A DNA stretch of 64,000 bases from Dimorphilus gyrociliatus (Eukaryota > Animalia > Annelida). The notes under the pieces are model-generated. The model was not told the origin of the DNA and did not search any database. It was given only the letters and a program-made list of their open reading frames with translations. Both the position numbers and the translations under genes were made by a program. The DNA is taken from positions 687,230 through 751,229 of the forward strand of contig CAJFCJ010000028.1 in NCBI GenBank assembly GCA_904063045.1. The letters are read 5' to 3'. The number at the start of each line of letters is the position of its first letter. Position 1 is the stretch's first letter. Of the stretch, positions 39,201-43,741 are shown one piece after another.

Positions 39201-40842
39201 GTTAATAGATTTTCTCGAGACATCGGATTTATAGACAATCTCCTACCAGTCATTGTCTATGATATAAATACAGTGTTTATGGGAATTATTACGGCTATAG
39301 GCTTTACTTTTTATGTCATCCCATACGTGGTTATTGTTAGTGTTTTCCTATGCCTAATATTGGCGTACGTCATATACTATGTTATAAGAACGTCGAGGCA
39401 TGCTAGAAGATTGGAAGCTGCAGCTAGAAGTCCACTTTATTCCGCCATTTCTGATACTTTACCTGGCTTAAGAACTATTAGAACTTTAGGCGTTTCTGAT
39501 AAGTATTTAGCAAAGGTTCAAAGACTTTCTGAAGAGCATACGAAAGCATGGTACATGTTCATCTGTTCGTTTAGGTGGATGGGTTTTCGGCTTTCGTGGA
39601 TTATATCACTTTTCCTCTTTTTGTCTAATATTTTGTGTATAGCATTAAGTTCAACTATAAGTCCTTCGCTTATGGGTTTAGCAGTCATAAATATTCTAAA
39701 TATCCTAGAACCCTTTGAATTCTTCTTTAGAATGTTAACTGAATTGGAGAATGCTGTAAGTAGCCTACGATCCCATATATATATATATTTTTTACCGAAA
39801 ACCTAATACAATTTAAAACTATTTTTAAAAACGAAAGATGACTTCCGTTGAAAGAATCAATGAATATACGAAAATTGAAAGCGAACATAGCCTTCATGGT
39901 AAACCAGAACTCGAACCGCCAAAAGATTGGCCTTCAACGGGAAAATTGCAATTTGAAAATGTAGTGTTGCAGTATATTCCAGAGAAATCTCCAGTTCTCA
40001 ATGATATTTCATTTACGTTCGAAAATGGCGAAAAGGTACAATATAATCAAGATGATTTATTAAAATAACAAAACAATTTCCTCTTAAAAAAATTATAGAT
40101 TGGTGTTGTTGGTAGAACTGGAGCTGGTAAGAGTTCTCTGCTGGTTGCAATGTTAAGGCTAGCCAAAACATCAGGAAAAATGATTCTTGATGGCATTGAC
40201 ATGACTAAATTATGTTTAGAGGCAACTCGCAAGCATTTTTCGGTAATACCCCAAGATCCGGTAATATTTGGTACAACGTTACGAAAAAACTTGGATCCTT
40301 TTAACGAGCATAAAGATACTGACATTTGGTTAGCATTAGAAAGAACTCAATTATCTCCCAAATTTGTAAAAGGCGTAGAGGGTTTAAATGTAGAATTAAC
40401 TGAGTCAGGTGCAAACTTAAGCTATGGCGAAAAGCAATTAGTATGCTTGGCTAGAGCTTTATTAAAGAAAACTAAGATATTAATTTTAGACGAGGCTACC
40501 GCTAACGTTGACGAAGAGACTGATGAAATTATTCAAAAAGTACTTAGAGACGCTTTCTATCAATGTACAGTTATTACTATAGCCCATCGTCTAAATACAA
40601 TTGTGAATTGCGGAAGGGTTTTAGTTATTGGAAATGGCAAAATAATTGAGGATGGTGATCCTTTGAACTTGCTAAAAATCAATAGTGAATTTAGACGTTT
40701 AGCTGAATACGACGGTTCGTCTAACGTAGATAAATTATTAAAGATGGGGGAAGAACTGAGGAACGATAATGGAACAGAATTGCTCAAGGACTCAATTAGC
40801 AACAACCACAATTCCGACGTAGTTGACGATACAATCTTGTAA
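36216..40842 (+). CDS. ABCC4: ABCC4/MRP4-like ABC transporter (TMD1-NBD1-TMD2-NBD2, no TMD0), about 12 exons
   Basis: [17 protein letters not shown]|W; NBD1 GHVGAGK|[26 protein letters not shown]; NBD2 [43 protein letters not shown]; C-terminal DTIL*. Exact orthology within ABCC is uncertain. Confidence 0.88.
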
Positions 40843-41461
40843 TATTTCCTAAGTCATTAAAGAAGTTATTCTGTTAGAACCTATTTATTGGGCAAACAAG
40901 ATAGAGACATTATCATTGCTCATAAAATTTAAAAGCAAAATATCGGAAAAAAAGGCACGTTTTTCTTTCTCTTATTCACTTGAAAAATTGATAAAATGAT
41001 CTATATGAATCATGTTTTATTCATATTTTTGCATAGGTTATTCACCAAATTATTGAATTTTATTACTTTTCAATATATATTTTTATTACTTTGCAACTAA
41101 ATCTTCCCTCTAGGTTAATACATAAAAACAAAATACATATATAGAGGTTTTATTCTCTAAATAAAATTGTTAAAATTATCCTTTCGACTCTGTTACCAAT
41201 ATTTAACTTAACTGTATACCATATTACACTTGAAACGTGGTAGAAAACAACAATAATCACGTGAAAATCAATAAAGTATGAATGCGCTTGGCCTGCGTAG
41301 AACAAGATCCAGCCTGCGTCTATCACTATTTGGGATTAATCTCATTAGGTATTGTTCACTTTATTTTTATAAGAAACTATTTTAAGTGTTTCTAACTTTA
41401 AAACCAATAGTTGTTTGTTTAAGGAATATTGTTAATCATTTTGTCAAAAACAAGTTGAACT

Positions 41462-43741
41462 ATGGCGGAAAAATTACAACAATCCGACCCTGAAGTGGAA
41501 AGAAATTGTCAAAAATTAATAAATGTTATGAGAGTGTGTAAAATATCGGAAGCAGACAAAGTAAAAAGAGATTGCTTTAGTGTATTAGAATTATTTTATA
41601 ATAAAAAAACAATTGATGAGAAACGAGCTATTTGCGAAAAATTAGTTGAAGAAGGATGTTCTAAACCTTTGGTTGATTGGTATGATTTGTTGGAAAAGAA
41701 TTTACAAGACAAAAATGCTAAATTGTGTTTCGAAAAGGTTAATAGGATAGTAATAGAATTTTCTTCATCCAGTTTTGGTTTTGGAGTTGCTGTTTTTAAA
41801 GCTGGACTTGTGGATTTTGTATTATCGGTTATGGATAGATTTAAAGAAACCTATAAAAAAGATAAGGTGTATTTTTTATTCAACTGCCATTTTCTTTTTT
41901 ATGCATAATTAAACGCTACACTTTCTTGAAGAGTAATTTTCGTATTTTGATTCAAAACATACATAAATATTATATATAAATAAAGAAAACCTCAATAAAC
42001 AAATGTCAGGATTGCTTAAAACTTTAAACATATCAGGCCTTTATACACAATATTGTAATATATGCATATATATAATTTTATATATTCAGTATGAGGGTTA
42101 TATTATGTTGACTTTATCTATTCACAAAACATTATTAATAATGTATTCATTACTAAACAGTTTCAAGAAAGATCTGTTATGGACTCTTTAGCTATTTTAA
42201 TGCATCTTGCAACAATTGTATCTATACGTGATGGATTGCAAGAAAAGTATTGCGAAAAGAAGGACCTATTCGAGTTTTATAAAGATCCAAAACAAAATAC
42301 AAAAACTACTTCCATTCTAACATTATCAATAATCAGTAGGCTTGCTGATGCATCTAATGAAGACGAAATTAAAGCAGATCATTCAATAATGGATTTCTTT
42401 AAAGAATTAGTTGAGAATGCTATCTCCTCGAAAGATAAAGTTGTCAAACGAAATGACATTGAATTTAGTCTTGAGAATCTTCTATTTACAATGGAGTTAT
42501 TAGCCTACAACGCTGAAAATTCAAAGTATATGCTTAAAAAGAAATTGGGACCGATTATCTTTAAAGCCCTTAAATTCAATAGTCAATTAAAGCGAGAATC
42601 TGAAACTAAATGCTGTCTCTCTACCCTTATGATTTTCTTGGAACTTGTAAATGAATTAGACGAGGGAGAAGTAGTCTTAGGTTGTCCAGGGCTGACTGAT
42701 TTTCTTCTGGAATTAAAGAGTCAAGGTCAAAGTTACGATATCGCCGAACTAATTGATGAAATTTTAGGATCAATCAAATCGTCGTGTGATTACGTTTACG
42801 AATGTAGAGAATTCTTTAATAGTCTAAATATACCTGGTAAGAAAGATATTTTGTTATAACCATATATTCTCAACTATTATACGATACATATACAGTATAT
42901 ATTTATATATACTAATGTATATGTAGTGTATGTATCCTATATTGTATTGGTATAATACAGTATAATAATAGAGTATAAATGAATAATTAATTCTGTTCAA
43001 TAGAGGAATATTTGGACGAGACACATAACGAATGCTATTGTAGCGTTTGCCATAAATCAAGAAAACAACCGGATTTTTATGAGAGGGGAGAGCCGCCTAA
43101 ATTTTATTCCCTTCCTATTGGATGGTATAGATTTGGTCTTAAGGTTCCGGCAAAGACAATTGCTCAAAGAGCTTTTGATAAATGGCATAGAGCCTTTCAC
43201 GGTACTCAAACAGATAGAATTGTTAAAATTCTACAGCACGGTGATTTGCTAATGCCTGGCGATAGAACAGCAGAGGGAGATCAACTGAGAGAGTTGGATG
43301 GGCACTATAACGACAAAACAAAACCGAAAGGTTTTAATACTAAGCAAGTATTTGTATCGCCAACAATAAAATATGCTGGTTTAGATTCATACGCAAAGCC
43401 TTACAAGTTGGTTAAATATAAAACAAAATATATTCGATACTACATCAAAAATTAAAATCGAACAATTTTCAGATGGAAAACAGATGGGAAGAAAGCAAGA
43501 GTCGCCTTTCAGGTTCTCATCCAACCAGATTCTTTCATTGTTGGAAAAGAAACGATAGGAGTAAAGCATCGCTTGGATTCTAAGTAATAAACTTTCTGAC
43601 AACTAATAATAATAATGATTATTAATAATTCATTTTAAAACAATTTTACACAGGTATACTAATAAGGAACTGGAATGGTCAACAGATAGGAGAGGTGTTG
43701 TTATCTTATACGGTATCCTCGTAAAAATCGAAAAGAAGTGA
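41462..43741 (+). CDS. ARM-like helical region fused to a NEURL4-type ADP-ribosyltransferase-fold domain (about 560 aa; exons 41462-41866, 42161-42836, 43004-43406, 43473-43583, 43654-43741)
   Basis: Phase-consistent splicing gives C-terminal CDYVYEC...CYCSVCH...RGEPPKFYSLPIGWYRFGL...WHRAFHGT...VFVSPTIKYAG...RVAFQVLIQPDSF...ELEWST...LYGILVKIE, colinear with the NEURL4 C-terminal domain. The N-terminal ~350 aa are helical and have no NHR repeats. Confidence 0.8.

Follow-up and report, generated by a model that had tools for sequence, protein, structure and literature searches.

A 64,000-nucleotide (nt) stretch of the genome of the annelid Dimorphilus gyrociliatus (the window), AT-rich eukaryotic DNA with a GC content of ~0.30, carries at positions 41462-43741 of the forward strand a five-exon gene for a protein of 560 amino acids (aa) that joins an armadillo (ARM)-type region, a short Cys-rich linker and an ADP-ribosyltransferase (ART) domain of the type found in NEURL4. 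We consider it reasonably likely that the product is a soluble ART of the H-Y-E class in which the ARM region docks a partner or substrate for protein ADP-ribosylation. The gene structure, its expression as one transcript, the homology of the domains, the conservation of catalytic motifs and the purifying selection were all seen directly; enzyme activity, the docking role, zinc binding and a cytosolic location are inferred.

The coding exons join to 1683 nt and 560 codons with zero internal stops. Exon 1 (41462-41866, aa 1-135) encodes predicted N-terminal ARM-type repeats, the main part of exon 2 (42161-42784, aa 136-343) about four predicted ARM-type repeats into which a short beta-hairpin is inserted, and the end of exon 2 (42785-42836, aa 344-360) a helix with a Cys-x6-Cys motif. 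The N-terminal two thirds of the ART domain are encoded by exon 3 (43004-43406, aa 361-495, its first and last codons split), its central beta-strands, which carry a conserved AFQV..P pattern, by exon 4 (43473-43583, aa 495-532), and its last strands by exon 5 (43654-43741, aa 532-560 and the stop codon, TGA at 43739-43741). The four coding introns, each bounded by GT..AG, measure 294, 167, 66 and 70 nt. This open frame, beginning with ATG at 41462, agrees exactly in its exon coordinates with the gene drawn in a preliminary description of the stretch, which had been made from the letters alone.

To establish whether the two halves belong to one message, we turned to public sequencing runs. One run (X3, its kind not on record) yields a 1973-nt contig with 0 differences from the window that omits precisely the four predicted introns plus a 62-nt intron (41346-41407) in the 5' untranslated region (UTR). 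This cDNA-type contig places the 5' UTR at 41300-41461 on the forward strand, exonic to 41345 and again from 41408 to 41461. Because the contig spans both halves with the introns removed, the ARM and ART halves are carried on one mRNA and are not the separate transcripts for which the preliminary description had left room. Among public runs recorded as RNA, none contains the gene's stretch. A processed retrocopy or other intron-less DNA copy was considered as the source of the contig and excluded, because exons 1 and 2 are found only once in the assembly. An upstream coding exon with Neuralized homology repeats (NHR) or SPRY was also considered; an in-frame TGA at 41456-41458, just 5' of the start codon, lies within the transcribed 5' UTR exon, and the gene therefore cannot extend into a coding exon further upstream. 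Within intron 2, a short AT-rich stretch (42866-42952) shows a 90-95% match to unrelated contigs of three runs and is probably a dispersed low-complexity repeat.

Exons 3-5 encode the ART domain, which makes up the C-terminal ~200 aa. In all searches and fold predictions of the window gene, single exons were used as queries. Against the worm's own genome, exon 3 matches G000:C2:1425124-1425435 on the reverse strand with E 7e-14. This site lies directly downstream of six NHR in a gene at G000:C2:1425124-1429715 (reverse strand), and because the ART there follows six NHR, this gene is the worm's true NEURL4 orthologue. Identity between its ART domain and that of the window protein is 38-41%. Judged from these comparisons, the NEURL4 likeness that the preliminary description had recognized is homology rather than chance. 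The catalytic and Cys motifs that it had listed are likewise all present: CxCxxCH (CYCSVCH, 43033-43053), FHGT with His426 (43195-43206) and SPTIKYA with Tyr484 (43357-43377) in exon 3, and ELEW with Glu537 and Glu539 (43667-43678) in exon 5, all on the forward strand. In a 92-member alignment, conservation reaches at least 90% at all three Cys in CxCxxC, at His and Gly in HGT, at Pro and Tyr in SP.I.Y and at one Glu in E.EW; the window gene retains every one of these positions, including His426, Tyr484 and Glu539. Human NEURL4 is inactive in vitro once HGS and ELEW are mutated together (Cardamone et al. 2022, PMC8932523). At these two motifs the window protein has HGT for HGS and an identical ELEW.

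Database searches of other kinds returned little. Pfam searches with each exon gave sub-threshold noise alone (Reb1_MybAD, Cytochrome_CBB3), which for the ART exons is expected, as Pfam offers no family for the ART domain of NEURL4 (PMC7955679). PDB sequence searches with exon 3 and with the 92-sequence ART profile gave no meaningful match, xanthine oxidase (E 0.5) being a chance one, and a NEURL4 structure was not found among PDB sequences. A word-index protein search with exon 3, restricted by a length window, recovered three exon-sized fragments.

We compared the gene with its orthologue from a related worm, which is represented by a syntenic Logan contig (L033) that has the same ABC-transporter gene upstream and covers exons 1-4, and for exon 5 by another contig (L035) of the same protein. 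Amino acid identity and the proportions of nonsynonymous (pN) and synonymous (pS) differences are 78%, 0.117 and 0.387 for exon 1; 67%, 0.187 and 0.843 for exon 2; 89%, 0.063 and 0.735 for exon 3; 75%, 0.169 and 0.792 for exon 4; and 87%, 0.121 and 0.692 for exon 5. Both halves of the gene are thus under purifying selection, strongest on the ART core. Unlike exon 1, exons 2-5 are saturated at synonymous sites (pS 0.69-0.84). The DNA at 41477-41898, which takes in exon 1 and runs ~30 nt into intron 1, aligns to L033:2286-2707 at 84% nt identity (pS 0.39), which hints at extra nucleotide-level constraint or at a different history of that piece. In the window, the C-terminal nucleotide-binding domain of the ABC transporter (40150-40842, forward strand) ends ~620 nt before the start codon.

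These data bear on whether the ART-like part is an enzyme at all, since it could instead be a pseudoenzyme or a reader of ADP-ribose or NAD+, leaving the protein only an ARM adaptor. Precedents exist in the human H-Y-E-clade ART-like domains of TASOR and LRRC9, which are without known activity (PMC9027952). In addition, NEURL4 activity has been reported by a single laboratory, and the His is lost in some paralogues and in the worm's own NEURL4 orthologue. The window gene, however, retains His, Tyr and Glu, its ELEW is the same as the motif required for human NEURL4 activity, and exon 3 is its most constrained exon at saturated pS. We therefore regard a purely non-catalytic protein as unlikely, and continue with the reading of the ART half as an enzyme.

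The N-terminal ~340 aa were described beforehand as helical and ARM-like, and this has held up. Protein language-model neighbours of exon 2 are all members of the ARM clan (ZER1-like, KAP, UNC45-central and ARM_LRRK2). An AlphaFold2 model of this exon shows stacked helices and a small hairpin (predicted local distance difference test score, pLDDT, 89.2; predicted template-modelling score, pTM, 0.83). By Foldseek it resembles APC, the ARM domain of HSF2BP, designed ARM proteins and plakoglobin (query-based template-modelling (TM) score 0.60), with a best E of only 1.5e-3, and by VIA it resembles beta-catenin with Z 13.5, about borderline for helical repeats. Using BLAST and iterated hidden Markov models, we found 18-24 proteins (profile matches) whose sequence directly before the ART is colinear with that of exons 1 and 2. 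Exon 1 is colinear with the stretch of these homologues between NHR/SPRY and the exon-2-like region, for example P0015 residues 425-557. Two colinear homologues exceed the Pfam Arm cut-off of 20.6 bits (P0011, 41.3 bits; P0008, 28.6 bits).

The segment of a Ptychodera homologue equivalent to the whole window protein was modelled with higher confidence (pLDDT 94.6, pTM 0.92). From its N-terminus the model runs through about seven repeats of three helices each (residues 1-310), a linker with little order, a helix that bears Cys and an alpha/beta domain. Beta-catenin (Z 17.6), Vac8 (Z 17.1) and APC (Z 17.0) match the ARM part of the model, and designed ARM proteins match the model with E 4e-7. 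The label 'ARM-like' is correct because both this model and that of exon 2 match ARM proteins. Judged from the exon 2 model and the colinear homologues, exons 1 and 2 form an armadillo-type solenoid of right-handed three-helix repeats. In a MAFFT alignment the rows of window exons 1 and 2 were misplaced under ART columns, and these rows were excluded from all claims. The last 17 residues of exon 2 form the Cys-x6-Cys helix (C344, C351), which is conserved before the ART even in members of the family that have no ARM region. The helix and CxCxxCH together probably bind zinc.

To place the gene within its family, we searched the worm's genome with exon 3 and obtained 11 further loci, of which nine lie at 2.925-2.962 Mb on contig C6, one on C17 and one, the NEURL4 orthologue, on C2. 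The genome thus holds at least 10 paralogues, nine of them in one tandem cluster. The cluster (at least nine paralogues at G000:C6:2925900-2964500, loci L025-L029) runs on both strands with the layout (SPRY)-ARM-ART. Its members share the three-exon ART layout of the window gene, have an ARM-like exon of 170-255 aa before the ART, and start with a first exon of 365-475 aa, which contains SPRY in two cases. Most of these first exons begin with Met-Gly (MGN.., MGL.., MGC..), a sequence feature that suggests N-myristoylation of the cluster proteins. Searching the same genome with exons 1 and 2 gave no paralogue by sequence; the alignment identifies the second exons of the C6 paralogues as diverged ARM regions. 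One paralogue elsewhere in the assembly is identical to part of the D. gyrociliatus GenBank protein CAD5115974.1, which indirectly confirms the species. This protein model, of 1588 aa with three stretches of ART sequence, appears to be a fusion of adjacent genes in the C6 cluster.

No window exon has a Neuralized or SPRY match in Pfam, in keeping with the reported absence of the six NHR, and by its domain content the window gene is not the NEURL4 orthologue proper. The two proteins share a homologous catalytic domain, the CxCxxC knuckle, HG[ST] and ELEW motifs and the C-terminal placement of the ART, but the window protein lacks NHR, has a ~340-aa ARM solenoid before the ART and is 560 aa long, compared with ~1500 aa for NEURL4. 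In the worm's six-NHR orthologue (loci L012 and L017-L024), AYYGT stands for HGT, so that the NAD+-binding His is replaced by Tyr, and CxCxxCY is found in place of CxCxxCH. With this His replaced, the canonical worm NEURL4 may be a less competent catalyst than its ARM-ART paralogues.

Beyond the worm, a profile built from 12 ART sequences of the genome matched 1006 cluster representatives (E <=1e-3) among 1.84 billion proteins. Many of these carry the name 'neuralized-like protein 4', with examples in a brachiopod, hemichordates, a crinoid and amphioxus; one is called 'PARP14-like', and protist proteins are also among them. The ARM-ART module is present in Lingula, Ptychodera, Saccoglossus, Glandiceps and Branchiostoma as well as in ~10 Dimorphilus paralogues. 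The usual layout is NHR and/or SPRY, then ARM, then ART, with Mind-bomb SH3 repeats standing in for NHR/SPRY in one amphioxus protein, and databases automatically name the members 'neuralized-like protein 4'. Such paralogues (XP_013418417.1, XP_070553198.1 and, from C6, CAD5115974.1) resemble the window protein in their order of ARM, Cys linker and ART, colinear with exons 1-5, at 47-56% identity in the ART and ~20% in the ARM region. They differ in having one or two NHR/SPRY, or Mind-bomb SH3 repeats, ahead of the ARM region with which the window protein starts. Contrary to what the preliminary description had supposed, the ARM region has not replaced the NHR: in the family it sits between NHR/SPRY and ART, and by its sequence the window gene is a short form that has lost the NHR/SPRY head. 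A quick maximum-likelihood tree groups the window gene and its orthologue with the C6 paralogues inside a dinophilid clade (SH-aLRT 90). For several paralogues the related species has a counterpart of its own, and since these are each paired across both worms, the dinophilid expansion is older than the split of the two species.

The modules that precede the ART bear on what the enzyme might act upon. In a census of 85 family members, we found Neuralized in 20, SPRY in 8, ARM_ARMC5 in 7, ZU5 in 6, Arm (PF00514) in 4, LRR, Ubiquitin, Kinase and WWE in 3 each and Macro in 1. On this evidence the NEURL4-type ART is a mobile catalytic module joined to targeting modules; the NHR, SPRY, ZU5, LRR, WWE and ubiquitin partners are mostly protein-binding, which fits a logic of targeting module plus ART. 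One hemichordate protein (P0031, XP_077997139.1, Glandiceps talaboti) is PARP14-like, with RRM, Macro and WWE, and its C-terminal end is a NEURL4-type ART. Another member (P0089), from the malawimonad protist Gefionella okellyi, has ARM repeats before its NEURL4-type ART, and the pairing is therefore not restricted to animals.

An ART acting on a non-protein target, such as a small molecule or the ends of nucleic acids, and an ARM region that serves for localization only would make a different use of the same parts. Nucleic acids are ADP-ribosylated by several PARP-clade enzymes (reviewed in PMC10789625), and the Cys-rich knuckle beside the ART could bind nucleic acid. Such a target is nevertheless highly improbable, given that the fusions of the family are chiefly with protein-binding modules and that Pfam detected no nucleic-acid-binding domain on the exons. 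We retain protein as the favoured substrate of the window ART.

The combination of an ARM region with an NAD+-using domain had led the preliminary description to a parallel with SARM1, and from there to gating, NADase activity and a role in immunity or cell death. Under this explanation the ARM region would keep the ART inactive, maybe sensing a metabolite or a pathogen cue, and its release would bring about NAD+ depletion or mass ADP-ribosylation by an immune or cell-death effector. In both proteins an ARM solenoid lies directly N-terminal of the NAD+-using catalytic domain, and their predicted overall shapes are similar: the top ESM Atlas whole-shape matches are clusters of the ARM-TIR and ARM-SAM-TIR types (TM by query 0.56-0.58), although this match covers mostly the ARM solenoid and comes without statistics. 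The PDB matches of the homologue's ARM part include SARM1 (Z 13.9, rank 24), but beta-catenin, Vac8 and APC, classical peptide-binding ARM proteins, score above it (Z 17), and the similarity between SARM1 and the window ARM is at the level of fold only. The pTM of the homologue model suggests a fixed ARM-ART contact, as a gate would require, and the family has habits of conflict genes, namely tandem expansion within one lineage, N-termini that diverge fast and promiscuous fusion with other domains (ZU5, LRR, WWE, Macro). Yet selection on both halves of the window gene is of the ordinary purifying kind, and orthology between the two species is one-to-one, which is not an arms-race signature.

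Other features also separate the window protein from SARM1. The catalytic fold of SARM1 is TIR, unrelated to the PARP-like ART here; its SAM octamerization domain is absent from the window protein, and Pfam found no SAM, TIR or oligomerization module on any exon. H-Y-E ARTs are as a rule transferases rather than NAD+ hydrolases. We found no evidence for the gating, NADase or immune claims, which draw on analogy only, nor for autoinhibition or allosteric sensing of NMN or NAD+ as in SARM1, and we judge a SARM1-like gate in the window protein quite unlikely. Its extension to the whole NHR/SPRY-ARM-ART family, which is expanded in dinophilids and abundant in hemichordates, brachiopods and amphioxus, as an undescribed class of invertebrate immunity or cell-death effectors in which ARM regions gate triggered ADP-ribosylation or NAD+ use convergently with SARM1, is very unlikely. 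An ARM region that acts as a partner-binding platform is the more economical explanation.

In the mechanism that we favour, an armadillo solenoid of about seven repeats over aa 1 to ~340 would be followed by the short Cys-rich linker and then by a PARP-like ART. The ART would bind NAD+ through His426 and Tyr484 and use Glu539 for transfer of ADP-ribose onto proteins. Kept near the ART by the linker, the ARM solenoid would be the docking platform that chooses the partner or substrate, and the protein would probably be cytosolic. The gene would descend from an old animal family with the order NHR/SPRY (or Mind-bomb SH3), ARM and ART that grew to ~10 genes in dinophilid annelids, the window copy having been relocated away from the tandem cluster without its NHR/SPRY head.

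The window ART shares with the PARP catalytic domain (PF00644) the HG[ST] strand-helix motif and a C-terminal Glu in a beta-strand, and the ART of the homologue matches viral PARPs in fold; unlike PARPs, the window ART has an extra Cys-rich knuckle, no significant sequence or Pfam match to PF00644 and no PARP regulatory helical domain. In a profile comparison (hhalign) of the ART family with five PARP domains from the same genome, WH.A.HGT..IL..G aligned to PARP LFHGT..IL.QG, that is, over the His motif alone. Foldseek comparison of the ART half of the homologue model with BFVD returned viral PARP catalytic domains, including one of Yasminevirus (E 6.6e-3, probability 1.0) and iridovirus 100L (E 2.2e-2, TM 0.45). 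The ELEW Glu is retained in all paralogues, and Tyr484 of SPTIKYA, nearly invariant in the family, is a candidate equivalent of the PARP Tyr.

Several points weigh against our reading. The hhalign match is weak (probability 21%, 22 columns, pairwise E 1e-3), and the BFVD matches are modest (E 6.6e-3 to 6.5e-2, probability 1.0). The triad of human NEURL4 has been given as H-L-E, with Leu of LLS at the Y position (PMC7955679). PDB match lists for the two-domain homologue model, from both Foldseek and VIA, are filled by ARM proteins, and the ART fold and its packing against the ARM region were read from a homologue 48-54% identical to the window protein, not from the window protein itself. The window exons match no Pfam Arm or related model. 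Finally, the enzyme activity of ARM-ART members is a prediction.

The ART domain of NEURL4 was reportedly predicted in 2012 by de Souza and Aravind. The NEURL4-type ART family has thus been known since that year and one member has been assayed, whereas the ARM-ART form is uncharacterized. Our literature search, whose coverage excluded the 2012 founding paper and a 2015 review, found no description of the ARM-ART subfamily. The suggestion that this architecture lacked a characterized example therefore stands as far as the literature search reached, but the gene is not a one-off, since the family extends across brachiopods, hemichordates and amphioxus.

NEURL4 is the least understood animal ADP-ribosyltransferase. 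Our results show that its catalytic domain also occurs in a compact, intron-poor, expressed form of 560 aa with a well-behaved ARM scaffold, and that this form belongs to a conserved, unstudied family that counts at least a dozen genes in four phyla. As a convenient construct, the short form would offer a tractable entry to the structure and enzymology of NEURL4-type ARTs. The family could show whether an ARM region recruits substrates to an NAD+-using enzyme or gates it; gating, if true, would mean that the logic of SARM1 had been invented a second time, independently.

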